IMG/VR virus record: IMGVR_UViG_3300023184_000025
Span: 62,001-126,000 of that record
DNA length: 64,000 nt
Reading direction: 5' to 3' (one strand)
Positions 34,036 through 62,352 of this stretch are shown here, piece after piece. Below the pieces are notes generated by a model that saw nothing but the letters and a program-made list of their open reading frames with translations, was not told where the DNA came from and made no database searches. How positions within the stretch are numbered: the first letter of the stretch is position 1; the number at the start of each line of letters is the position of its first letter. A program made the translations under genes and the position numbers.

Positions 34036-34251
34036 TTATTCTAATCCAAAATGTTTGAGTAAAGCTTTTTCCTTGCCAGATACTGTGGCACATTCGCGAA
34101 CAATGCCTTCAGCAAATAACTGTAATTCATCCAGGCGCAAGGCACAGAATAAACTTGGATTTGCTTTAAATGCATCAAGAAAGTCCTCCTCATTGAGTTT
34201 TTCTTTAAAAGCACTATCGGCAATTTTAATAAAATTTTCATGCATAGTCAT
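34036..34251 (-). CDS. Hypothetical protein
   Basis: ATGA overlap with the ligase; FAEGIVREC...KHFG motif. Confidence 0.65.
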   Translation of the reverse strand: MTMHENFIKIADSAFKEKLNEEDFLDAFKANPSLFCALRLDELQLFAEGIVRECATVSGKEKALLKHFGLE

Positions 34252-35621
34252 AATTTTTCTCCTTGTTCAAATCCACGGAATCGCAAAAATCGAGGAAACC
34301 TCAGACTGTACGATCCGTCTTGGTTTTGCGTAACTGCGTCAGCTTCAACTTCAACCACGCACCCCAAAAGTTTATCCCTAGCGGTCCAATACTCATCGCG
34401 ATCGCTATCAGACAAACCACTGCCAACATTAACCCTAATATTTCGGTCATTATCGACTCCTTCACAAATTATAGCACCCAACCGGCCAAGATTGCGACCG
34501 GTTCCTTCTTCGAAACCCACAATATCGAGATCAACAGTGATAGTAGGTTTCCATTTCATCCAAAAGTCTGAACGTTTGCACTCGTAAGGTGCATCCATTG
34601 TTTTGATCATAATGCCTTCGTAGCCTTCTTCTACTGACGCTTCGGCAAACCTACGCATGACATCATGCCCTTCTGCTGTGTCTAAGTCCACATCCATACC
34701 AGGCATGATTTGCACACACCCATTTTCTGGTAACATTGCTTGAGCACGTTTTAAGAGATCAATTCGCTTGTGCTGTTGCAAATTACAAAAGCCTTCACGG
34801 AACTCTGTCAACGGCAAGATGTCAAACACATGATACACCATGTTGTCTGTTCGAGCATTGCTCTTGCGTTGAGCCTGTTTCATCAGGTCCTGGAAATTCT
34901 TGCCCACAATCTCGCCATCCAACACAAACTGTCCACCAAAGGCAGAATTACGTTGAAATGCTTTGCGATGTTCTTCAACAAAGTCAACAATCTGTGGGAA
35001 GTTCTCAAACTCTTTGCCATTACGACTGTACAATGTACAAGCAGATCCATTCACAACTGCCAACACACGCACACCATCCAGCTTGACTTCCAGGCGCTTG
35101 ATGCCTTTTAGTTTCTTGGGCTGGTCTGTAGAGTCCTGTGCTAGCTGGCAACTGAAGATTGGTATCTTCCATTCAGTCTTGCCCAGTACTTTGTTTAGAG
35201 TTTTCTCTGAGATACCGCATCTCAAGTCCTTGATCAACACCCGTCGAGCCAAGTTATTCCACTCGTCTGAGTCAAACATTTGACTGCAAGTTTCAATTGC
35301 CTCTCTTGCACGATTACCGGTGACGCTTCTGGTACGTAGACTTTCTAACAAGGCCCAAAACGTAGTCCAGGGGTTAGGCATACCGGTCAGTCCGTTGGTC
35401 TCGGGTACCTGACGGATGTTAAAAGTGTAGAAAGGATTATAGGCCTGGTAGCAATTAAAGAGAAAACATTGTGCATCGGCACTACCAAGTCTTGCCGCCA
35501 TTAGTGCTTTTTCAATGGTTTTTTCTTTGTGTATGCGACTGTCCGAACTTTCTAAATCACGTATCCAGCCTGCGGCCATTGTGTTGTCAAACCTTTCGTC
35601 GCTAAAATTAATATCTTGCAT
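34248..35621 (-). CDS. ATP-dependent DNA ligase
   Basis: KLDGVR, LDGE, EGIMIK, WMKWK, SLRFPRF motifs. Confidence 0.95.
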   Translation of the reverse strand: MQDINFSDERFDNTMAAGWIRDLESSDSRIHKEKTIEKALMAARLGSADAQCFLFNCYQAYNPFYTFNIRQVPETNGLTGMPNPWTTFWALLESLRTRSVTGNRAREAIETCSQMFDSDEWNNLARRVLIKDLRCGISEKTLNKVLGKTEWKIPIFSCQLAQDSTDQPKKLKGIKRLEVKLDGVRVLAVVNGSACTLYSRNGKEFENFPQIVDFVEEHRKAFQRNSAFGGQFVLDGEIVGKNFQDLMKQAQRKSNARTDNMVYHVFDILPLTEFREGFCNLQQHKRIDLLKRAQAMLPENGCVQIMPGMDVDLDTAEGHDVMRRFAEASVEEGYEGIMIKTMDAPYECKRSDFWMKWKPTITVDLDIVGFEEGTGRNLGRLGAIICEGVDNDRNIRVNVGSGLSDSDRDEYWTARDKLLGCVVEVEADAVTQNQDGSYSLRFPRFLRFRGFEQGEKL

Positions 35622-48240: not shown

Positions 48241-48563
48241 TACACTCTAAAACTTTCTCCGCAACCGCAACGATCTCTTTCATTGGGATTGATAAAATCC
48301 ATGCCTTGTTTGAGACCATCGCTTTTCCATACCATGGTTAGTCCATTTAGATAAGGCATATCTTTTGGACTAACATAAACTTTAAAGCCGCTTGGATCTT
48401 CATAGTCTACTACATCATCCAGTGGGTTGTCAACAAATTCTACTCGATAGGCTAATCCACTACAGCCAGTGGTATGCACACTTATTCGTATTCCTAGACC
48501 TTTGCCTCGACTGACTAGTGCTTGTTGTATTTTTTCTGAGGCGTCATCAGATATATTAATCAT
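48240..48563 (-). CDS. iscA: Fe-S cluster carrier IscA
   Basis: GCSGLAY, CGCGESF motifs. Confidence 0.92.
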   Translation of the reverse strand: MINISDDASEKIQQALVSRGKGLGIRISVHTTGCSGLAYRVEFVDNPLDDVVDYEDPSGFKVYVSPKDMPYLNGLTMVWKSDGLKQGMDFINPNERDRCGCGESFRV

Positions 48564-49146
48564 TTTTAAAATAACCTCCGCAAGCAAAGCTAACACGTAA
48601 TATATCATCAACTACAGGGCCAAGTGGTTGATGCAGGCAAGAGCCGTTATGCCCCACTAGCTGGCCCGGCTCGGGCAAAATTCTCTCTGTGACATTTAAA
48701 TTGGTGTCATAATAGAGTAATGGGCCGCCCCAGCTTTGTTCCCAGGTTGGGTTTAAATAAATCACAGTTGATTCGTAGCTAGAAATATCATCTTCTAGGT
48801 CTCTATGAATTACATCATCCTGTCCTTTTGTTAGCCCGTTAATTACAAAATTAAATATTTGAAAATTTGGACCATATGCCTGCATAACTTTATTTAGAAT
48901 TGTAACCCAGATTGGAGATATGGTTGACTGCCAATTAGGCTGATTTATAAACCAGGTACTAGGGTCTGACTGTAATATTTTACCTGAGTAACTAGAAAAC
49001 ACTCGATAACGCCATACATTTTTAGTTACGCTGTTATCAAAAGAACACCTCTTAGAATATTGCCACTTTGGGATATTTTCAATTTCAGTCCAGGCCAGAT
49101 CTAATTCGTCTTTTGTTAAAAAATTTGGAATATTTCTTAAAATCAT
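48556..49146 (-). CDS. 2OG-Fe(II) oxygenase
   Basis: HRD, YLNPTW...WGG, H...R motifs. Confidence 0.8.
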   Translation of the reverse strand: MILRNIPNFLTKDELDLAWTEIENIPKWQYSKRCSFDNSVTKNVWRYRVFSSYSGKILQSDPSTWFINQPNWQSTISPIWVTILNKVMQAYGPNFQIFNFVINGLTKGQDDVIHRDLEDDISSYESTVIYLNPTWEQSWGGPLLYYDTNLNVTERILPEPGQLVGHNGSCLHQPLGPVVDDILRVSFACGGYFKND

Positions 49147-49529
49147 CTAGCATGTCTTTTTTTATAATCTTCTACAGCCGCTTTGATTGCGTCTTCTGCA
49201 AGAATAGAGCAGTGAATCTTAACAGGGGGCAGGGCTAGTTCTTCGGCAATTTCGGAATTTTTAAGTTGGCTGGCTTGGTTGATGTGCATGCCTTTGACCC
49301 ATTCTGTAACAAGGCTCGAGCTTGCAATAGCCGATCCGCAACCATACGTTTTGAATTTTGCATCTGTAATAATACCTGTATCATGATCAACCTTTATCTG
49401 TAATTTCATTACATCTCCGCAAGCAGGTGCGCCCACCATGCCGGTGCCCACATCTTCGTCGTCCTTTTCAAAGGAGCCCACGTTGCGGGGATTTTCGTAA
49501 TGATCAATTACCTTGTTTGAGTATGCCAT
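49143..49529 (-). CDS. iscU: Fe-S scaffold IscU
   Basis: GAPACGD, GCGSA, LPPVKIHC motifs. Confidence 0.97.
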   Translation of the reverse strand: MAYSNKVIDHYENPRNVGSFEKDDEDVGTGMVGAPACGDVMKLQIKVDHDTGIITDAKFKTYGCGSAIASSSLVTEWVKGMHINQASQLKNSEIAEELALPPVKIHCSILAEDAIKAAVEDYKKRHAR

Positions 49530-49537
49530 GTGATTTC

Positions 49538-49657
49538 CTAATTCATTATTCCGTGGGCTATGCACCATAGCTCTAAACTTATCTTATACAATAAGTATGT
49601 GCTGAGTAATCCTGTTAGCAACAACAAGATCTTGTTTTGTAATAACTTTGTTGTCAT
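49538..49657 (-). CDS. Small TM protein
   Basis: ATGA overlap; hydrophobic. Confidence 0.5.
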   Translation of the reverse strand: MTTKLLQNKILLLLTGLLSTYLLYKISLELWCIAHGIMN

Positions 49658-50046: not shown

Positions 50047-50382
50047 TTATAAACCTTTTTTGTTCAAAGCTCGTTTGGCCATTTTGTCAACTGTGTCTCT
50101 AGCCTTGTCTACGGACATGGTAGAGTCTGGAACTTGTGCTCCTGCAAAAACGATGTCGTTGCCCTGAATATTATCTATTAGATTACTAAGGGGAGGTTGT
50201 TGTATTGCTGTTATCAATTGATCCTTACTAAGACTAATTCCCATACTTTGGGCTAATCTTAAAAAGGCATCAACTGATATTTGTTTTTGGGCGTTGGTGT
50301 CACCCGCACGTCCAATTAAAAATTGTGTTAACGCTTCGAGTTCTGAATTGTTAACACCTTGTTCAATCTCGTCTAGTCGCAT
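50047..50382 (-). CDS. Putative head-associated protein
   Basis: MRLDEIE N-terminus; TAATG overlap. Confidence 0.6.
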   Translation of the reverse strand: MRLDEIEQGVNNSELEALTQFLIGRAGDTNAQKQISVDAFLRLAQSMGISLSKDQLITAIQQPPLSNLIDNIQGNDIVFAGAQVPDSTMSVDKARDTVDKMAKRALNKKGL

Positions 50383-51287
50383 TATCGACGATCACGACCC
50401 AACGACGACGCTGGAGGTAAATCATCTTCGGCAGCGTCGACATCTAGGTCGGCAGCATCTGCGTCAAGATCAGCGGCATCGCCATCTAGGTCAGCACCAG
50501 CATCAAGATCGGCAGCTGGGTCAGCGGCTAAATCTTCTTCGCCAGGAACAACAGGTGCTTGTCCAGTTAATACGGCTTGGGCGCCTTCAAGTTGAGTTTT
50601 GCCTGCTTGCACAGCACCCAGCAATGTGCTCAATGCGGCTGTGGCATCAGCTTGGAACTTGGTGGCTTGATCAATCCCCATGTCGTTACGAATGCTGTCA
50701 GTCAATGCTGGTAAGTCTTTGAACTGCATTTCAGATATCTGTTCAAGCATTTTTTGAATCTGGTCAACCATGTCCTGTGCGGCTAGCACAACTTGAGCTT
50801 GTTGAATTTCGCTTTCTCTTAATCGACGTTTTGCAATTCTTGTTGTCTCTGCCATGCCTAAATTAGGTTGGCTTATTTGCTTCTGAATATTACGAACCTG
50901 TTCCTGCGCTGCCTTCAGTTGATCTTGTAGAGCTTTTTTCTGCTTGGCAATTTGAGCAGCCTGCTGTGCAGGGTTAACTGCTGGCTGACCAGGAACAGCG
51001 CCTGGAGCAGTAGGTGCAGTACCTGGTGTTGGAGGAATTTCCTCTGACAGTCTACTAGCAAGTCCTTGCTCAAGCATGATTAGCTTTAGGTAAGCAGGCT
51101 GTCTTTCACTCTTGTGAAAAGCAGGAGTGCGTTGATGCTCTTTGATTAGGTTTCTAACCTGTGTGAGCATCTGGCGTGTTTGGCCAGTGTTTAACCGGTC
51201 AAAGTGTACAGAATAACCTAAACGGTTTTCAAGTACCTTTTCGGTCTGTTTTGAAATTCGACGTGCGTCCAGTTCTTGCAGTTTCAT
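50382..51287 (-). CDS. Putative prohead core/scaffold-like protein
   Basis: Coiled coils, LxE sites, acidic DLDA repeats; TAAATA 51311-51316. Confidence 0.5.
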   Translation of the reverse strand: MKLQELDARRISKQTEKVLENRLGYSVHFDRLNTGQTRQMLTQVRNLIKEHQRTPAFHKSERQPAYLKLIMLEQGLASRLSEEIPPTPGTAPTAPGAVPGQPAVNPAQQAAQIAKQKKALQDQLKAAQEQVRNIQKQISQPNLGMAETTRIAKRRLRESEIQQAQVVLAAQDMVDQIQKMLEQISEMQFKDLPALTDSIRNDMGIDQATKFQADATAALSTLLGAVQAGKTQLEGAQAVLTGQAPVVPGEEDLAADPAADLDAGADLDGDAADLDADAADLDVDAAEDDLPPASSLGRDRR

Positions 51288-52031: not shown

Positions 52032-52457
52032 TTATTTATTGTGTGCAGACTCAAAAACAATGTTTGTTCTAGGGATTAACACACCATCAAATCTATCTGT
52101 TTCTTCTAAGTTAACCAACATAGGAACACCGTTGCAGTCGTAGTATAGTGCGCCTACACTATCGTTGCCTAATTGTAAGGCAGTTGGTTGTTCAACTGTG
52201 AATTCAAATTCCCAGATCTTTTTTCCATCTTCTATCACTGTCACAGGATCAGTAATGTCTACAGGAGAGGTTCTAAGACTAATGATTTGATTAACTGTTT
52301 CCCAGTTTCTCTGTTGATTTCTAGCATGATGCCAATCAGTCTGATTATTAACAGTTGTACCTGTTTTTGTTGTTAACGGTATCTGTGAGGATTTAAAATG
52401 ACTTTTTATACCAGTTGGCGTAATGTCAAAATACGTATAACATCTTAATCTTATCAT
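52032..52457 (-). CDS. Hypothetical protein (FDITPTG...RNQQRNWET)
   Basis: TAAATA 4 nt before MIRLRC. Confidence 0.7.
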   Translation of the reverse strand: MIRLRCYTYFDITPTGIKSHFKSSQIPLTTKTGTTVNNQTDWHHARNQQRNWETVNQIISLRTSPVDITDPVTVIEDGKKIWEFEFTVEQPTALQLGNDSVGALYYDCNGVPMLVNLEETDRFDGVLIPRTNIVFESAHNK

Positions 52458-52473
52458 ATGGTATTTAACGGCC

Positions 52474-52501
52474 AAAAAAAACCCTGGAATAAATCCAGGG
52501 T
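52474..52501 (-). terminator. Intrinsic terminator
   Basis: ACCCTGGA/TCCAGGGT stem plus U run. Confidence 0.75.
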
Positions 52502-52523: not shown

Positions 52524-52994
52524 TTAGGCCAACTTGAAGCCTGGGTTAGTAACAAGTGTGCCGCTAACGTTAACACCAGTCACTGTACCATCGCTGGCTG
52601 TGATCTGGATGTTGCCAAGAGCTTGCAATTGTGTCTGCAATGTGCCAGCAGTATAAGCGCCACTTGGGTAAATAGCGTAGCTGATTTGACCGTTTGAAGC
52701 GTCGCCTTCTACTTGGTAGATAGCAATAGTAGATGTAGTCTGGATCGACTGGTTGAGTTGAACAACAACACCTGGATTGAATACTGTACCGCCGCCACTG
52801 TAGTTACCCAGTTGTGGACGCAGATCGATTGCTGTAGCTGAGCCGTCTTTAACTAGAACTTTGAAAAAGTCTAGCTTTGGACCTTGCATCTGCACTAGTG
52901 CATCAGCTGAAATTGTACCAGTCTGTGGACCGTTGTTAATGTCTAACGCAAATACCGGTTGCGCATCACCGTTGAATGGTGGAAAATATGCCAT
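52524..52994 (-). CDS. Putative abundant virion structural protein
   Basis: TAAATA, strong SD, own terminator, G/T/A/N-rich. Confidence 0.55.
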   Translation of the reverse strand: MAYFPPFNGDAQPVFALDINNGPQTGTISADALVQMQGPKLDFFKVLVKDGSATAIDLRPQLGNYSGGGTVFNPGVVVQLNQSIQTTSTIAIYQVEGDASNGQISYAIYPSGAYTAGTLQTQLQALGNIQITASDGTVTGVNVSGTLVTNPGFKLA

Positions 52995-53063: not shown

Positions 53064-55016
53064 TTATCTGGGATTGTTTTGTTGGGCGTTACCAGCTGAA
53101 AAAACGCCGCGGTTTACCAGCTTAACCAGGCCGTGAGGTGTGTTAACCACAAACCCTTCGCCTTCGGCTTTACCAGCTGTGGTTTGTTTTAATCCATTCA
53201 CTTGTTGTTCAAGCTGTTGCGCCATGCCAAGCTTGGCATTATAAATGCCGTCCCAAATTTGTTGTAGGCCTGTGTATGCAGGACTGGGAACAATTTTACC
53301 TGCTCGATCTAAAGTGAACAATTTGCCTGGCAGGTTGTCAGTTTTAGCATTGTATTGTCCTTGAACATCCGGATTGCCAGCCACTAACTCAGCATATTGT
53401 TTGCCGCTGGTATTGACTTTGAGCCAGTTGTGTAGGCTCAGCGTTGTGCCGCCAATGATGCGCTGATTGAAATAGGTCTGAATTCTCTGTCTGACAGATC
53501 CAGGAAGCGAGTTCAGCAATTCGTCTACTGCCGTGCCGTATGTGGATACTGCTTTTTTGGCCGCTGAAAGATTGGGCTTAGACAGTTTGAATTTTGTGCC
53601 CAGAGTTGGTGTTAATATAGCCACACCACCCGGTACATTCTCTAATCCTTGTCCATCCCATACTTGTGCTGTTTTATCACCCAGCTTGTTAAAGTGTTGA
53701 TGCACAACAATGCCTCCCGACTTGCCATTGATAATTTGTCCTTCGGGGCTGTTGGCTGGGATAGAATATTGAACCAAATTGGGTCTGAACTGGTATTCAC
53801 CGCTGGTGGGTGTTAGCTTGCCAGCCCACAACAAATCCCCCCAGTAAAATCCTGAGCCTTTGGTAGCCGCATCTAGGCCAGGCCAAATAGCTTTTAACTT
53901 AGGGTATAAATCTGTTCTTAAATTGCCACTTTTCTTTTGTTGATCGTATTTGATCCAATCTTCAGGGCTTTGTGCGGCATAGCCAGCGTCGAACATGTAC
54001 TTGTCCATCACAGACAGACGTCCATTGGGCAAGCGACCAAAGACCAATGCAGGTTTACCGTCCCATTTGATTGTGATATTTTTGTCATTGCTGGCGGCAG
54101 CTTCTAGGCCTTGTATGGCTCGAGATGCGGCTTGGCTATTGCCCATAAAGAAAGCATCTTCGGGGTGCGGAATTCTTGGATCTTTCTTGGCAGGCATTGT
54201 TGTGTCGGCTTCAACCAAGGGTTGCATGCCTTGATTAACAATTCTGTCACGAAGTTTTGCAATAAAACTCACATCACTTTCTTGCACTTGCCCTGGCTCT
54301 TGTAAGCCGTCTCTGGTTAGGTATTCTCTAAAGTCCTGTAACTTGGCTTCACGGTCAGGATCTTTGGACAATGCGGTATAGATGTTTTCAACTGTGGACA
54401 AATCTTTAATAGTAGCTGTAGGGCCAAGTAAAATTTTTGCCGCTTGATCAGGATCCAGAGTTAACACATTTTCTGTGGCACGACTAATGATTCCTTTGGC
54501 ACTGGCCTTAAGTCCCAATGCTTTGGCCACGCTACTCATCAAGACATTTCTATACATGCCTTTGTATTCTGAACCGGCGCCTCCACCTAACCAAAAAGTA
54601 CCCCAATTGAGATTGGGCATTAACATAAAGTCCGTTTGCACAAATCCTTTTGTTGGATCTCCTGCAATAGGAGTTTTAAAATGTACTGCTTCGCCGCTTA
54701 ATTTTACCCATTCTTTTGGGTCTTGTTTCATTTTAATAATGAACTGGTCTAGATTTGCTTTTAACTGTGGTTTACTGATTTCGTTGCTATCAACTGCAAG
54801 GTCCAGGTCACCAGATGTGGGTTTTTTTCCTGTACTGCCCAGCCAGCGTCGCGGATATCCAGTGGATGGATCTTTGTCGTCGCTTAGATCAAGACCTGTG
54901 ACTCCTTCTAACCATTTAATGGTTGCCGGAACATCACTTTGACTGATACGCTGTGTTAATGGCTGACCCTGTGCATCTTTAAACACGTTGCCGCCTTCTA
55001 GCAACCTGTTGATCAT
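53064..55016 (-). CDS. Nucleotidyltransferase + ligase-like (KWDG) fusion protein
   Basis: LGSTG...GDLDLAVD; HPED, IKWDGKPA, EGFV, VKLVNR motifs. Confidence 0.65.
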   Translation of the reverse strand: MINRLLEGGNVFKDAQGQPLTQRISQSDVPATIKWLEGVTGLDLSDDKDPSTGYPRRWLGSTGKKPTSGDLDLAVDSNEISKPQLKANLDQFIIKMKQDPKEWVKLSGEAVHFKTPIAGDPTKGFVQTDFMLMPNLNWGTFWLGGGAGSEYKGMYRNVLMSSVAKALGLKASAKGIISRATENVLTLDPDQAAKILLGPTATIKDLSTVENIYTALSKDPDREAKLQDFREYLTRDGLQEPGQVQESDVSFIAKLRDRIVNQGMQPLVEADTTMPAKKDPRIPHPEDAFFMGNSQAASRAIQGLEAAASNDKNITIKWDGKPALVFGRLPNGRLSVMDKYMFDAGYAAQSPEDWIKYDQQKKSGNLRTDLYPKLKAIWPGLDAATKGSGFYWGDLLWAGKLTPTSGEYQFRPNLVQYSIPANSPEGQIINGKSGGIVVHQHFNKLGDKTAQVWDGQGLENVPGGVAILTPTLGTKFKLSKPNLSAAKKAVSTYGTAVDELLNSLPGSVRQRIQTYFNQRIIGGTTLSLHNWLKVNTSGKQYAELVAGNPDVQGQYNAKTDNLPGKLFTLDRAGKIVPSPAYTGLQQIWDGIYNAKLGMAQQLEQQVNGLKQTTAGKAEGEGFVVNTPHGLVKLVNRGVFSAGNAQQNNPR

Positions 55017-55978
55017 TTTTTACCTTTAGATTCAACCACTGCTATTTTTTTCTTTTTCTTGACTCTACTCTCTTTTAAGTCAGTACCTCCTGTGCGCATC
55101 CACATATTTCGTATGGCTGATCTCACAGCTGGAGAGCCAGTGGATCCATCAGCATCTGCAAACTCATCAAACATCTTGGTAATCTTTTCTGCAAACTCAT
55201 TTGAATTTGGTTTTACTGGTGCTGCCGGGGCAGACGCAGGTTCAGGAGTTGTGCCGCCTGCCATTTGTTGCTGTGCGGCATTAGCGGCAGCGGTTTGCTT
55301 TTGTTGTCTAATTTGTGCAGGTGTTTGTGCTGGTGTAATAGTTGGATTAGGCGCCATTTGTTGCTGTGCAGTGGTGGCAGCAGCCGCTTGCTTTTGTTGT
55401 CTAATTTGTGCAGGTGTTGGTTGAGCAGGTGTTGGTGTTGTTGCTGGAGTAGTAGCCGGTGGTGTTGTTGCTGGTGGCGTTGCTGGAGTAGTAGCCGGAG
55501 TAGTAGCTGGTGGCGTTGCTGGATTATTTCCGCCGCGTTGACCTTTGGGTTGTCTTTGTTGCATACGTGCGGCACTAGTTCTGACAGCCAACGACTGAAA
55601 TGCCGCAGGTAACTCCTTGGGAGCATTTTTCTTAGATGCAACATACTGAATAGCCTGATCTACCCGAGCCTTGCTGGTCGGGTCAAGTTGACTCATTTGA
55701 CCACCTAACATAACTTTGTTAACAAAATCTGAAAGGTTAGCAGTATATTCCTGATCACTAATAGGTTGTCCCATATTAGCACGTTGCAGATTCACGGTCT
55801 TGTTAATCCAATTTTGGGAGGCAACCTGTGCCAATTTTTTCATTGACTCGTCGTTTTGCATGGCTTTGATTTTTTGATCGTAGCTCATGTTTGCCAATGC
55901 AGGATCTCGGCTCACAGCCGCTTTTAAATAATCCATAACACCTGCTTCGGTAAGTTTTGTTAGCTCATGAATCTGCAT
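55013..55978 (-). CDS. Putative head-associated protein with Pro/Ala/Thr/Gln repeats
   Basis: MQIHELTKLTE N-terminus; internal repeats. Confidence 0.6.
   Translation of the reverse strand: MQIHELTKLTEAGVMDYLKAAVSRDPALANMSYDQKIKAMQNDESMKKLAQVASQNWINKTVNLQRANMGQPISDQEYTANLSDFVNKVMLGGQMSQLDPTSKARVDQAIQYVASKKNAPKELPAAFQSLAVRTSAARMQQRQPKGQRGGNNPATPPATTPATTPATPPATTPPATTPATTPTPAQPTPAQIRQQKQAAAATTAQQQMAPNPTITPAQTPAQIRQQKQTAAANAAQQQMAGGTTPEPASAPAAPVKPNSNEFAEKITKMFDEFADADGSTGSPAVRSAIRNMWMRTGGTDLKESRVKKKKKIAVVESKGKK
55260..55525. repeat. Coding repeats: 2 x ~66 bp at 93-bp period plus PATT array
   Basis: TPAQIRQQKQ.AAA..AQQQMA twice; PATT/PATP tandem. Confidence 0.85.
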
Positions 55979-56288: not shown

Positions 56289-57350
56289 ATGGATACATTT
56301 TGCGTATTACCGTGGTTTAGCAAAGAAATTGACTATAACCACAACGAAACACCGTGTTGTTTATTGCCCAAGAATCACAATCTTGAAGAAATTAAAAAAG
56401 ACTTATTATCTGGTCAACAATCATCTGCTTGTCAAAAATGCTGGTCATTGGAAGATCAAGGTTTAAAAAGTGATCGTCAAGTTAAAAACGAATCTTTAGA
56501 TTTTTATTGGGATAAAGACTTAACAAAAATCATGGAGGATGCCACACACGGTATTACTCCTACACGCATACTAAAATTAACAACCAGTTATACTTGTAAT
56601 GCTACCTGTGTAAGCTGTGGCGCTGGTGCAAGCAGTAGCTGGGCACAACTTGATCGTCGCACAGATCCAACTATACCAATTAAAAAATACAAATTCATTG
56701 ACATAGAAAAAATCAAGCAAGGTGTAGATTTTAAAGAATTAAAAATGCTAAGTTTGCTCGGCGGTGAACCACTGTACGAAAAGAAAAACTTTGACCTGCT
56801 AGAACATTTGCTCGATACAGGCAACGATCAACTATTTGTAAGTATGATAACAAACGGAAGTGTTGTACTGTCAGATAAACAAAAAAGAATACTGTCAAAA
56901 TTTAAAAATCTTAATTTTTCTCTCAGTATTGACGGAGTTGGACCAGTTTTTGAATATCTTAGATTTCCGTTAAAATGGGATCAGTTGATTCAGAATCTTC
57001 AATTCTTTAAAGAAATTTCTGAGAATGTTAGTTCAAATTATACATTAAGTAATTTGAATTTATTGTACCATAATCAAACAAAACAATGGTTTGATCAAAA
57101 TCATATAGTATATTCTGTAAATCCAATTTATAAACCAGTTTGGTTACAGCCAAGATCGTTGACATCAAGTATCAAACAGGTGCTTAAAGAAAAACTCAGC
57201 CCAATGGATTATAACATGTTTGTGGGAGTAGTACACACAGATCAAGACCAACAAAATTTTAATTTAATGTTGGAAAATATCAAATTACAAGACTCTTCAA
57301 AAAATATTTTAATTAAAGATTATTTGCCTGAACTTGTTAACCTGTTTTAA
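56289..57350 (+). CDS. Radical SAM protein with N-terminal Cys cluster
   Basis: CNATCVSC, GGEP, TNG, SIDG motifs. Confidence 0.85.
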   Translation: MDTFCVLPWFSKEIDYNHNETPCCLLPKNHNLEEIKKDLLSGQQSSACQKCWSLEDQGLKSDRQVKNESLDFYWDKDLTKIMEDATHGITPTRILKLTTSYTCNATCVSCGAGASSSWAQLDRRTDPTIPIKKYKFIDIEKIKQGVDFKELKMLSLLGGEPLYEKKNFDLLEHLLDTGNDQLFVSMITNGSVVLSDKQKRILSKFKNLNFSLSIDGVGPVFEYLRFPLKWDQLIQNLQFFKEISENVSSNYTLSNLNLLYHNQTKQWFDQNHIVYSVNPIYKPVWLQPRSLTSSIKQVLKEKLSPMDYNMFVGVVHTDQDQQNFNLMLENIKLQDSSKNILIKDYLPELVNLF

Positions 57351-58779
57351 TTTGTCCTAGCAATTGCTTTAATTTAGCACTTTGAACATCAGCTGACACC
57401 TTCGGTGGTTGTTCCCATGCTGGTGTTCCTGTAGGCTTTTCCCATTTGGTTGACGTTGGAGTTACAGTTGTGTTGTCAGTCACATTACTTTTTGTTTTGA
57501 TTGAGTCCATAATGTTAAACTTAGGACCTCCTCGAAAATTATCATTATCTGCAATGCCTGGATCAGTAATACGCATAGTTTCAATGTTGTATTCCAAATC
57601 AATCTTTTGTCCTACACCTGTTGAACTCCGACTCTTCATGCACTGGATTTGATACTTGCCACGCTCTTTCATAGCGCGACTTGTAAAGATACCAAACACG
57701 TTGTCAGCTGTATTAATTTTAGAAATACCACCTGAAATATGACTGTGGTCAAATTCAATTTCTTCCACAGCTGATCGATTCAACTGCGATGCTGTAACCA
57801 TTAACATGCCAAGTTCCTTGGCCAAGTTACGTAATTCCTCACTCACATACTTGTCTTTTACAAACAAGTCATTGGGGCTAACCTTGGCACTTACCGGCAT
57901 CAACAAGTCCAAATAGTCAATCATCATAAAGTCTACTTTGATTCCTGTCTGGATCTGTACTTCTTTAACATAACTCCTAATGTCATTAATGTTGCTTTGT
58001 GCTGGCAATGCCTTGACTCGATATTGTCCAGATTTTTTACTGACCAGTCGAACCTTCAGAGTAGTAGTATCAATGTCTTTGCGGATGTCTTTGGTACTCA
58101 TGCTGGTTAGCATAGCATCTGTGCGCAAACTAGTGAGCTCTTCACTAAGTTCCAGTGTAATGTACACTCCACTGAGTCCTTGTTGTAACCAGTTAAGCGC
58201 AATGTTCATCATGACCAAACTCTTGCCTGATCCTGATCCGCCTGCAAAGATGTTGAGTTCGCCCCTGCTAAATCCACCATACAACAACTTATCCAGTTGC
58301 GGCCAACCTGTTGATACTTGCCCACCCGAGTTAAAGTATTTGTTGATACGTGCCGCAGGATCAGCAAAGTAATCTGTGCCCATGTCTTTGGTGAGAGAGA
58401 TTTGCACAGCGTCTTTGATCAGTTTTTCTACAGGTTCAAAATCGCCTTTTTCCAACAGGTCTGCACTTTTAAGAATAGCACGTTCAAGTTCCTGACGCTT
58501 GGTAAACGATTCAAACTCTCCCATAAACCAATCAAAGTGTCCTCCGTTTAAATCTGGTACGGATGCAAGTTTGATTCCTGTGGTGGCACTGATCTGTGTC
58601 CTGTCAGGCATAGTTTTGTGTTTGTCGGTGTGTTCTTTAATGAACTCGGCTGCCGGTCTTAAACTACGATCAAAGTTTTGCGGATTGTAAATATTTTGAA
58701 CACGCACATAACTACTTGCGTCCTCAAGCATCATTTCTAAGAATAATCGTTGAACATCAACACTATAGTTAGTAAGCAT
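57337..58779 (-). CDS. DnaB/gp41-like replicative helicase
   Basis: GGSGSGKS, IDYLDL, TASQLNR motifs. Confidence 0.92.
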   Translation of the reverse strand: MLTNYSVDVQRLFLEMMLEDASSYVRVQNIYNPQNFDRSLRPAAEFIKEHTDKHKTMPDRTQISATTGIKLASVPDLNGGHFDWFMGEFESFTKRQELERAILKSADLLEKGDFEPVEKLIKDAVQISLTKDMGTDYFADPAARINKYFNSGGQVSTGWPQLDKLLYGGFSRGELNIFAGGSGSGKSLVMMNIALNWLQQGLSGVYITLELSEELTSLRTDAMLTSMSTKDIRKDIDTTTLKVRLVSKKSGQYRVKALPAQSNINDIRSYVKEVQIQTGIKVDFMMIDYLDLLMPVSAKVSPNDLFVKDKYVSEELRNLAKELGMLMVTASQLNRSAVEEIEFDHSHISGGISKINTADNVFGIFTSRAMKERGKYQIQCMKSRSSTGVGQKIDLEYNIETMRITDPGIADNDNFRGGPKFNIMDSIKTKSNVTDNTTVTPTSTKWEKPTGTPAWEQPPKVSADVQSAKLKQLLGQIKTG

Positions 58780-61564: not shown

Positions 61565-62352
61565 CGGTACTGTATTAAATCAATGTTTCCGTCAGATATA
61601 CCAAATGATAATCTTAGATAAGGATGATACCCCTCAACGTTGATGCCTAATCTTTCAACTGCATGAATAAAGTTTATTTCTGACACAGTATTACTTGTTT
61701 TTAAATCTTCAAAGTCTACATCGTACCATTCAACAGTATTGGCTGTGGCATCTGACGATCCTTGTACTTGAAGTGTGCCAGTAAAGTCCACTGGATCAAT
61801 TTGGAATGTAGTAATACGTGTACCATTTGTGGTAATTGTACTGGTGTAATGGATAGAGCTGTCAGGGGCTTGGCTTGGGATAGTTAATTCTTGGCTGGCA
61901 ACAAAAGCTGGAAATACGCTGTCTACAATATCAATATTCCCACGAGCGCCTGCATAGTCGTCTGTGAATACTGCTTGATTTAAAACGCCGGACGTAATTT
62001 CTAAACTCCAACTAGCGGGCTGTGCTTGAAAATATGTTGTCTCTTCGGCAGTGACAGTTACTTTAGCTCTACCTGTTGGTGCATTAAGTGTTACAAGCTC
62101 TTTGGCATATAACAAATTTTCTCCGTCTTGACTAATCATACGAAACGTAAACGTTGCGCCTGTGATGTTTACAGGTTTTTGGTCCTGGTTTAGAAATTGG
62201 AATAAAATAACATTATCCACTCCTAAATTTAATTTTAAGTCTTTTGCGTACACTGGTTGCCACCTTCTATCAAAAGTTGAGCCAATGCCTGACGTGTCAA
62301 TCAGAATTACCTGTTGGATTTGCTGATATAAATAGGCAGTGGTTGAATACAT
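61561..62352 (-). CDS. Putative virion structural protein (BppU-like beta domain)
   Basis: TAAATA 62369-62374; F.NQDQKPVNITG motif. Confidence 0.55.
   Translation of the reverse strand: MYSTTAYLYQQIQQVILIDTSGIGSTFDRRWQPVYAKDLKLNLGVDNVILFQFLNQDQKPVNITGATFTFRMISQDGENLLYAKELVTLNAPTGRAKVTVTAEETTYFQAQPASWSLEITSGVLNQAVFTDDYAGARGNIDIVDSVFPAFVASQELTIPSQAPDSSIHYTSTITTNGTRITTFQIDPVDFTGTLQVQGSSDATANTVEWYDVDFEDLKTSNTVSEINFIHAVERLGINVEGYHPYLRLSFGISDGNIDLIQYR

Follow-up and report, generated by a model that had tools for sequence, protein, structure and literature searches.

A jumbo-phage protein with a PolX-like and a ligase-like DUF6267 domain, a candidate gap-filling and nick-sealing enzyme

What kind of enzyme results when a nucleotidyltransferase domain and a ligase-like domain are joined in one phage protein, and on which nucleic acid would it act? 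The question is raised by the gene named here P0001, found in a stretch of 64,000 nucleotides (positions 62,001 to 126,000 of IMG/VR record IMGVR_UViG_3300023184_000025) that is referred to below as the window and numbered from its first letter. The source record is a virus genome of 345 kb whose completeness was judged to be 99%, that is, a jumbo phage. The list of open reading frames (ORFs) and the translation show P0001 as a single minus-strand ORF, unbroken between 55016 and 53064. An initial annotation, made from the letters alone, had proposed a Pol-beta-type nucleotidyltransferase fused to a ligase- or capping-enzyme-like domain in a probable head protein. The parts of the gene, in window coordinates, are the following.

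53064-55016, minus strand: P0001, whole gene, 650 amino acids from an ATG start; PolX-like domain, linker and ligase-like DUF6267 domain
54201-55016, minus strand: N-domain, residues 1-272; PolX-like palm and thumb (residues ~1-210), then three extra helices
54801-54839, minus strand: G60-S61...D70-x-D72, nucleotide-binding Gly/Ser and the first two predicted catalytic carboxylates; invariant in 28 homologues
54630-54632, minus strand: D129, predicted third catalytic carboxylate (VQTDF); invariant
54201-54305, minus strand: interdomain linker, residues 238-272; predicted local distance difference test score (pLDDT) of 40-66, with L-Q-E240, L-V-E269 and a conserved helix ARLRDRIVNQG
53067-54200, minus strand: C-domain, residues 273-650; DUF6267, nucleotidyltransferase fold with a helical insert at ~484-603 and no OB domain
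54057-54068, minus strand: motif I, K317-W-D-G320, with the predicted AMP-accepting Lys; invariant, on model strand 314-317
53829-53840, minus strand: G393-D394-L-L, candidate motif III (Asp for the usual Glu) by its position; strand 389-398
53109-53159, minus strand: motif IV, E620-G-F-V, and motif V, V-K632-L-V-N-R636; two adjacent C-terminal model strands

Two domains and their folds

The motifs on which the initial annotation leaned (G60-S61, D70-L-D72, Q127-T-D129-F, K317-W-D-G320, G393-D-L-L, E620-G-F-V and V631-K-L-V) are all present in P0001. A word-based search gave more than 3,600 homologues, nearly all of them unnamed metagenomic proteins and mostly of 600-660 amino acids, with the two-domain layout of P0001. 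Conservation was read from an alignment of 28 full-length homologues showing 47-78% identity. Invariant residues were E7-G-G-N10, G60, S61, D70, D72 and D129 in the N-domain, H284, E286, D287, K317, W318, D319, G320, G393 and D394 in the C-domain and, towards the C-terminus, E620, G621, K632, V634 and R636; the predicted catalytic residues are all among them. The alignment confirms that the motifs are not chance strings. The proposed two-domain make-up was borne out as well, since the halves were modelled as separate confident domains with pLDDT values of 89.9 (N) and 94.0 (C).

The N-domain model, built by AlphaFold2 with 36 homologues, resembled one polymerase family above all others. Foldseek against the PDB gave only family X DNA polymerases as top matches, namely Thermus (Tth) PolX, Pol lambda and Pol mu (E ~6e-6, probability 1.0, ~200-216 columns). 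In VIA-align, an exhaustive structural alignment of the domain models against 48,161 solved chains, the top 10 chains were all PolX enzymes, matched over palm and thumb with Z-scores of 7.1-9.9 and 152-182 residues. Pol beta reached Z 9.9 over 166 residues (model residues 6-210 against Pol beta residues 102-335), followed by TdT (9.7), Tth PolX (9.6), Pol lambda (9.4) and the PolX of African swine fever virus (ASFV), with Z 8.7 and 159 of its 176 residues aligned; Leishmania Pol beta, Pol mu and Deinococcus PolX are also among the ten. After PolX the scores dropped, as terminal uridylyltransferases, cGAS-like enzymes, poly(A) polymerases and CCA-adding enzymes gave Z values of at most 6.8 over only about 85 core residues. 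The palm motif set of family X is complete, with G60, S61, D70, D72 and D129 invariant in 28-36 homologues. The 8-kDa dRP-lyase and helix-hairpin-helix domains are absent, as the domain has only 272 amino acids and the alignments begin at Pol beta residue ~100-140. As modelled, the N-domain is specifically PolX-like, with palm and thumb and minus the 8-kDa and helix-hairpin-helix parts. The Pol-beta-type call of the initial annotation was therefore right and could be sharpened to a family X DNA polymerase likeness over palm and thumb, rather than that of a generic nucleotidyltransferase.

At the level of sequence the link between the N-domain and PolX is thin. The N-domain had no match in Pfam, NCBIfam or PDB sequences, and neither PF14792 nor PF14791 matched P0001 or anything in the whole genome at E up to 10. 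One relative, P0426, passes Pfam DNA_pol_B_palm (PF14792) over GS...DxD with 26.1 bits against a cut-off of 25, and another, P0208, shows a sub-threshold thumb match. The Polbeta/NTP_transf_2 Pfam matches of P0211 were not used as proof of N-domain identity because they fall in a separate extra domain; in this protein of 393 amino acids, what comes after the N-domain is not DUF6267 but another Pol-beta-type nucleotidyltransferase domain, unrelated to the first (PF18765/PF01909, at residues 303-393). Membership of the RlaP family was also rejected, as PF10127 was unmatched by the N-domain (E up to 1) and in the genome. The N-domain opens with the motif [LI]-x-E-G-G-N (residues 1-10; 54996-55016, minus strand), which is invariant in all homologues and is kept even where the domain sits inside a larger protein.

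Pfam assigns the C-domain to DUF6267 (PF19782) with an E-value of 1.3e-24 and 87.7 bits against a cut-off of 27, P0001 residues 283-643 corresponding to profile positions 5-371 of 376. A literature search on DUF6267 found no publication in the collection of papers that it covered. With VIA-align, the top 22 of the 48,161 chains were all ATP-dependent RNA or DNA ligases, at Z 5.0-7.1 over 144-199 residues, values that individually lie within the range flagged by the program as possibly unspecific. The best matches were Naegleria NgrRnl (Z 7.1), T. brucei REL1 (6.8), T4 Rnl1 (6.4) and T4 Rnl2 (6.2); fungal Trl1, archaeal Rnl3 and, at Z 5-6.3, many DNA ligases were also matched, and capping enzymes come next (Z 4.4). 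RNA-ligase and DNA-ligase scores are less than 1 apart, which amounts to a tie. Foldseek gave weak matches in lists filled with ligases, and in BFVD the first named folds beyond the domain's own family were RNA ligases of phages and giant viruses.

Motif IV (E620-G) and the Lys of motif V (K632) are invariant and stand in order, motif V being without a second Lys, and the helical module (~484-603) sits ahead of motif IV. The candidate motif III, with its Asp, was assigned by position and not by residue-level structural alignment. Because a single small superfamily fills the top of the list and the invariant motifs I, IV and V lie in order on the expected strands, the modelled C-domain can be placed firmly, as a structural member, in the DNA/RNA ligase/capping-enzyme superfamily. 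The ligase/capping-enzyme call of the initial annotation holds in this sense, as a superfamily placement by structure, and the domain equals Pfam DUF6267. Sequence searches did not reach this far. PF01068, PF09414 and PF09511 had no match in P0001, for which Pfam gives DUF6267 alone, and in scans of the genome they matched only a separate canonical ligase. NCBIfam had no match for P0001, PDB sequence searches with the whole protein and with profiles A2 and A3 returned nothing meaningful, and hhalign found no relation between the C-domain profile and the same phage's own DNA ligase.

Pairing of the two domains among relatives

A profile search with the N-domain over 1.8 billion representatives yielded 1,374 clusters, and architectures were read from the best 150. 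Among these the order N-C was found 42 times, C-N three times and the N-domain alone 66 times; the N-alone proteins are short, and many are fragments or products of split genes. Forms containing an HxGH nucleotidyltransferase (H) also occur among the best 150, as H-N-C, N-C-H, C-N-H and H-N. In contig L004 an N gene is directly followed by a C gene, and in contig L005 a C-only gene is preceded by one for a 444-residue protein retaining the N-domain motifs. The PA5oct-type Pseudomonas jumbo phages encode a 237-residue N homologue (hhalign probability 98.4) two genes away from a 446-residue ligase-like protein, which carries KIDG and EGYV...VKIV and whose fold match was confirmed in BFVD; the motif IV/V block of P0001 aligns with the PA5oct-type protein P0468. 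The PolX-like and DUF6267 domains are thus fused, permuted, split or neighbouring, and they are associated in most relatives. These relatives are widespread in aquatic phages and amount to thousands of metagenomic proteins.

The predicted ligase-like active site is also a place of intein insertion. In the relatives P0169 and P0171 a split intein starts right after KWDG. At L019:5001-8177 (P0171, P0470 and P0469), the gene is fractured: the N-domain and the opening ~45 residues of the ligase domain run up to KWDG, after which comes an N-intein (Cys1); a 253-amino-acid ORF lies between the intein halves, and the next gene starts with a C-intein of ~37 amino acids ending in VHN, after which a Ser follows and the ligase domain resumes. 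Inteins favour the active-site motifs of replication and repair enzymes, and the insertion at KWDG speaks for an enzyme of this kind.

A recurrent additional partner is the HxGH nucleotidyltransferase, present in 14 of the 54 relatives with several domains and also in operons of cyanophages and in fusions of the S-PM2 type. The phage studied here encodes one such protein outside the window:

G000:C1:4630-5622 (L003:1159-2151, minus strand in L003): HxGH protein ('GGFHPFHAGH'), 330 amino acids, cytidylyltransferase-like

This protein shows 37% identity to the third domain of P0053-type fusions (ligase-like, PolX-like and HxGH) and weak PPAT/NMNAT-type matches, and its family adjoins or is fused to DUF6267 in cyanophages. 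Some relatives are considerably larger. P0446 (1,802 amino acids) has four N-domain stretches with HxGH and NUDIX domains, P0367 joins HxGH, DUF5661, Tad3 and the N-domain, and other giant relatives (P0352, P0360 and P0371 in our set) include NT5C-type HAD phosphatase and amidoligase domains. ART-PolyVal was seen in one of the 54 multi-domain relatives scanned. Tad3 is an inhibitor of Thoeris (PMC13728456). In the ESM Atlas, DUF6267 is joined to a domain of Cu/Zn superoxide dismutase in a single cluster of viral proteins.

Genomic setting and a possible virion link

P0001 belongs to a region devoted to replication and nucleotide metabolism. Next to it stands a DnaB helicase gene, and the surroundings also encode a radical-SAM enzyme, a NifU-like protein, ribonucleotide reductase, an exonuclease and the canonical ATP-dependent DNA ligase. 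The features that matter below are these.

55013-55978, minus strand: upstream gene P0322, 321 amino acids; its stop overlaps the P0001 start (ATGA)
52524-52994, minus strand: downstream gene of 156 amino acids; no family match
52481-52501, minus strand: terminator-like hairpin of 8 pairs, then a T run, 3' of the 156-amino-acid gene; consensus match only
52032-52475, minus strand: gene of 147 amino acids, homologue of PA5oct EST35_0234 (blastp E 2e-5)
50382-51287, minus strand: gene of 301 amino acids, homologue of PA5oct EST35_0237 (blastp E 1e-13); phrog_14154 'virion structural protein' (E 7e-15)
57337-58779, minus strand: DnaB-like replicative helicase; Pfam DnaB_C, phrog_19 (E 3e-69)
34248-35621, minus strand: canonical ATP-dependent DNA ligase; phrog_114 (E 4e-94), NCBIfam ligase models, PF01068 (E 5e-25)
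49143-49568, minus strand: NifU-like Fe-S scaffold
56289-57350, plus strand: radical-SAM gene

P0322 consists of a small N-terminal domain, a long low-complexity middle rich in P, T, A and Q (ATTP-type repeats) and a Lys-rich tail; it had no family matches, and in contig L004 a counterpart with 33% identity precedes the homologous gene. On the other side, the 156-amino-acid gene is probably the last of the P0001 transcription unit, and the hairpin at 52481-52501 may close this unit ahead of the virion-protein-like genes. A search for the T4 late-promoter motif showed no enrichment, and sigma-70-like sites were found at chance level only.

Synteny extends to distant genomes. A helicase gene also lies upstream of the homologous genes in L004, L005, L019, S-WAM1, HTVC008M, Melnitz and P-HM1. 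The NifU-like and radical-SAM genes recur within a few kb of the polymerase-ligase gene in unrelated contigs (L004, L005 and L019), which suggests that they form a conserved block. The gene at 48556-49146 (minus strand) was labelled 'DNA endonuclease V' by PHROGs (phrog_274, E 4e-12); this label is doubtful because NCBIfam gives a conflicting match, below cut-off, to 2OG-Fe(II) oxygenases and because cyanophage 2OG-Fe oxygenases occur in the equivalent neighbourhood. Outside the window, G000:C1:287900-307992 holds a cluster made up of 28 tRNA genes and one gene for a tmRNA (tag ANDEQFALAA).

Is P0001 a head protein, as initially proposed? Its position does not support this: a place in the head module was rejected, given that the neighbours are helicase, radical-SAM, ribonucleotide reductase, exonuclease and ligase genes and that a T4 gp21-type prohead protease is encoded ~79 kb further along the genome. 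Indirect support comes from PA5oct, which shares synteny with the genes that lie downstream of P0001. The PA5oct proteins EST35_0231 (the N-domain homologue), EST35_0234 and EST35_0237 are annotated as virion or structural proteins by ESI-MS/MS (tandem mass spectrometry with electrospray ionisation; PMC7318152), whereas the ligase-like EST35_0228 is not marked as detected. The same study counts 'virion-unrelated enzymes' among the proteins detected by mass spectrometry (PMC7318152).

The [LI]xE tripeptide occurs only three times in P0001, at E7, E240 and E269, always conserved and outside the folded cores, and by our estimate chance alone, at typical residue frequencies, would give about as many. 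The two linker sites are conserved in 24 and 27 of the 28 sequences, respectively. Since [LI]xE is the cleavage consensus of the T4 prohead protease, the linker sequences are compatible with sites for a protease of this type.

Concerning the ligases of related phages, five Kyanoviridae genomes (S-WAM1, HTVC008M, Melnitz-3, P-HM1 and P-SSM2; records KU686210, KC465899, MZ577098, GU071101 and AY939844) had no PF01068 or PF01653 ligase match. In the four in which the locus was checked (S-WAM1, HTVC008M, Melnitz-3 and P-HM1), DUF6267 is the only ligase-like gene found; it lies just downstream of the gp41 primase-helicase gene and is always preceded by an overlapping gene of 350-485 amino acids. 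In cyanophages a 'cytitidyltransferase' gene comes after the DUF6267 gene or is fused to it. These profile scans agree with the published remark that the group is without any known ligase (PMC7824862). The gene upstream of DUF6267 was considered as a hidden N-domain homologue and rejected, as no such homology was detectable in S-WAM1, HTVC008M, Melnitz or P-HM1 and the motifs were seen only in the 444-amino-acid protein of L005. A standalone ligase DNA-binding domain of cyanophages (AAX44695.1) was likewise discarded as a companion because neither this genome nor the PA5oct-type phage has it; three window genes of similar size are a coincidence.

Possible functions and known systems

We favour, with about an even chance of being right, the reading of P0001 as a coupled gap-filling and nick-sealing ('fill and seal') enzyme for broken polynucleotides, DNA being the favoured substrate. 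In such an enzyme, D70, D72 and D129 of the N-domain would serve to extend a 3'-OH by one or a few nucleotides, K317 of KWDG in the C-domain would be adenylylated with ATP, and the AMP would then pass from K317 to the 5'-phosphate before the nick is closed, the C-domain having a helical insert where an OB domain would be expected. The substrate could be gapped or nicked duplex phage DNA, such as intermediates of repair, of recombination or of the lagging strand, and possibly the phage genome as it enters. The folds, the conserved catalytic residues, the association of the two domains across phages and the replication genes nearby are what the analysis shows; that the protein catalyses these steps, on which nucleic acid and with which nucleotide donor, and whether it is packaged or cut, we infer. 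DNA is favoured because the PolX thumb is kept, because the gene travels with replication genes and because DUF6267 is the sole ligase-like gene found in the Kyanoviridae checked.

Several observations weigh against a DNA fill-and-seal enzyme. On the side of the ligase, the C-domain Z-scores (7.1 at most) individually fall within the range of possibly unspecific matches, motif I is without the Arg of KxDGxR, motif III has Asp and not Glu, and motif V reads K-x-V and not K-x-K. The C-domain model has no OB strands and the chain stops 14 residues past motif V (R636), while all DNA ligases known to us carry an OB domain; the nearest folds are RNA ligases, and P0001 itself is matched by no ligase or PolX hidden Markov model (HMM). 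On the side of the genome, this phage already encodes a canonical DNA ligase, as do the PA5oct-type phages; the profile scans found no Rnl1, Rnl2-type ligase or RlaP in it, a lack that, like its 28 tRNAs, suits RNA repair. Finally, the frequent fusion to HxGH and the occasional fusion to Tad3, ART-PolyVal, NUDIX or NT5C are unexplained by simple DNA repair.

Part of this evidence points to RNA repair, a possible but distinctly less probable function, in which the N-domain would put back the nucleotides that a tRNA, or another RNA, has lost on cleavage and the C-domain would rejoin the ends, countering host anticodon nucleases and similar defences. An OB-less C-domain with NgrRnl, REL1, T4 Rnl1, Trl1, T4 Rnl2 and the phage and giant-virus RNA ligases as nearest folds would suit this function, and so would a phage with 28 tRNAs and a tmRNA that lacks Rnl1, Rnl2 and RlaP and has a DNA ligase already; there is, moreover, a precedent for a Pol-beta-fold transferase working with RNA ligases (PMC7824862; bioRxiv 10.64898/2025.12.29.696909). 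However, the N-domain matches PolX over palm and thumb and RNA-specific transferases over the core only, it is not RlaP by HMM, and the gene stands among replication genes. Beside P0001, neither a polynucleotide kinase/phosphatase nor a 2H partner for end healing was seen, and the RNA- and DNA-ligase Z-scores, being less than 1 apart, do not separate the two substrates. Bacterial LigD is known to seal DNA breaks by means of a ribonucleotide patch; purely by analogy, one might imagine that P0001 seals DNA via a short ribonucleotide patch, which would fit the DNA-side and RNA-side facts alike.

Two further readings concern delivery and small molecules. P0001 could be a virion-packaged, injected effector, cut at [LI]xE by the T4-type prohead protease into two enzymes that, ahead of phage gene expression, would serve in the repair of restriction damage or in NAD+/nucleotide counter-defence. 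We regard this as doubtful; it concerns delivery and is compatible with either a DNA or an RNA substrate. It draws on the annotation of EST35_0231 and of the two PA5oct counterparts of downstream genes as virion proteins, on the three conserved [LI]xE sites outside the cores in a phage with a gp21-type protease, and on relatives within giant proteins that carry ART-PolyVal, Tad3, NUDIX, NT5C and amidoligase domains and recall the polyvalent proteins (PMC5512222). Yet EST35_0228 is not among the marked proteins, the PA5oct set includes enzymes unrelated to the virion, the number of [LI]xE sites is close to our chance estimate, and P0001 has no MuF, portal or capsid-targeting domain and is encoded far from the head genes, beside a helicase. 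Very improbable, in our view, is a pair of small-molecule enzymes that, with the HxGH (NMNAT/PPAT-like) partner, would make or modify an NAD+-related nucleotide or AMPylate a protein. The recurrent fusion or adjacency of HxGH described above is explained by none of the fill-and-seal, RNA-repair or LigD-like patch readings, and one relative with HxGH and NUDIX has the layout of NMNAT-Nudix NAD+ enzymes. Nevertheless, both folds are of polynucleotide type, the PolX thumb and the ligase motif set have no known small-molecule-only relatives among the top matches, and in this phage the HxGH gene is ~110 kb from P0001. A broader scheme, which we consider unlikely as a whole, would combine these elements: a packaged, protease-cut minimal PolX and OB-less ligase would be injected to mend incoming DNA or cleaved tRNA before expression, and DUF6267, possibly supported by HxGH, would be the missing ligase of marine T4-like cyanophages and pelagiphages.

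The family of P0001 represents a variant, as yet uncharacterised, of repair enzymes already known and not a new kind of system. Judging from the models, DUF6267 would be a previously unrecognised OB-less member of the ligase superfamily, and we know of no earlier phage polymerase-X/ligase fusion. The superfamily placement of DUF6267 and of its PolX-like partner offers testable functions for thousands of aquatic-phage proteins and makes DUF6267 a candidate ligase for the T4-like cyanophages and pelagiphages that appear to lack one. Such a minimal PolX, and a ligase that has an inserted helical module but no OB domain, could also be useful as enzymes. If the virion link is true, the phage would deliver nucleic-acid repair enzymes along with its genome.

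Among known systems, the polyvalent proteins (PMC5512222) share with this family the giant multi-domain relatives and a virion-associated homologue, but P0001 has two domains only and no MuF, portal or peptidase module, and the polyvalent-protein survey is without this polymerase-like or ligase-like family (PMC5512222). RlaP (PF10127; T4 NrdC.11 and the RlaP of RtcB operons) is an analogy of organisation, a Pol-beta-superfamily transferase genomically coupled to a ligase, as in P0001; the addition of 1-2 nucleotides ahead of ligation has been proposed for it and in part demonstrated (PMC7824862; bioRxiv 10.64898/2025.12.29.696909). P0001 differs in having a PolX-type thumb instead of the helical domain described for PfRlaP, and DUF6267 instead of Rnl1, Rnl2 or RtcB as the partner. 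The nick-sealing RNA ligases NgrRnl (Rnl5), REL1 and T4 Rnl2 have, like the C-domain, a nucleotidyltransferase core without the OB domain of DNA ligases. In the C-domain, however, the accessory domain is not appended but interrupts the chain between the middle motifs and the last ones, the motifs are the variants KWDG, GD and K-x-V, and no Pfam RNA-ligase family is matched.

On the DNA side, bacterial LigD resembles P0001 in fusing a polymerase to an ATP-dependent ligase for break repair. Its polymerase is of the archaeo-eukaryotic primase type and does not have the Pol-beta fold, and its ligase combines a nucleotidyltransferase with an OB domain and matches the C-domain only at a low score (1vs0, Z 4.2). 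The pairing of a family X polymerase with an ATP-dependent ligase, to fill and seal in base-excision and end-joining repair, is otherwise found in ASFV PolX and ASFV ligase, in Pol beta and Lig III, and in Pol lambda or Pol mu and Lig IV. The sequence similarity of P0001 to these PolX and ligase families is below HMM detection. Yet ASFV PolX is minimal in the same way as the N-domain, without the 8-kDa and helix-hairpin-helix domains, and what sets P0001 apart from the ASFV and eukaryotic pairs is that both activities would reside in one polypeptide, whose ligase part is without an OB or DNA-binding domain and has a helical insert added.

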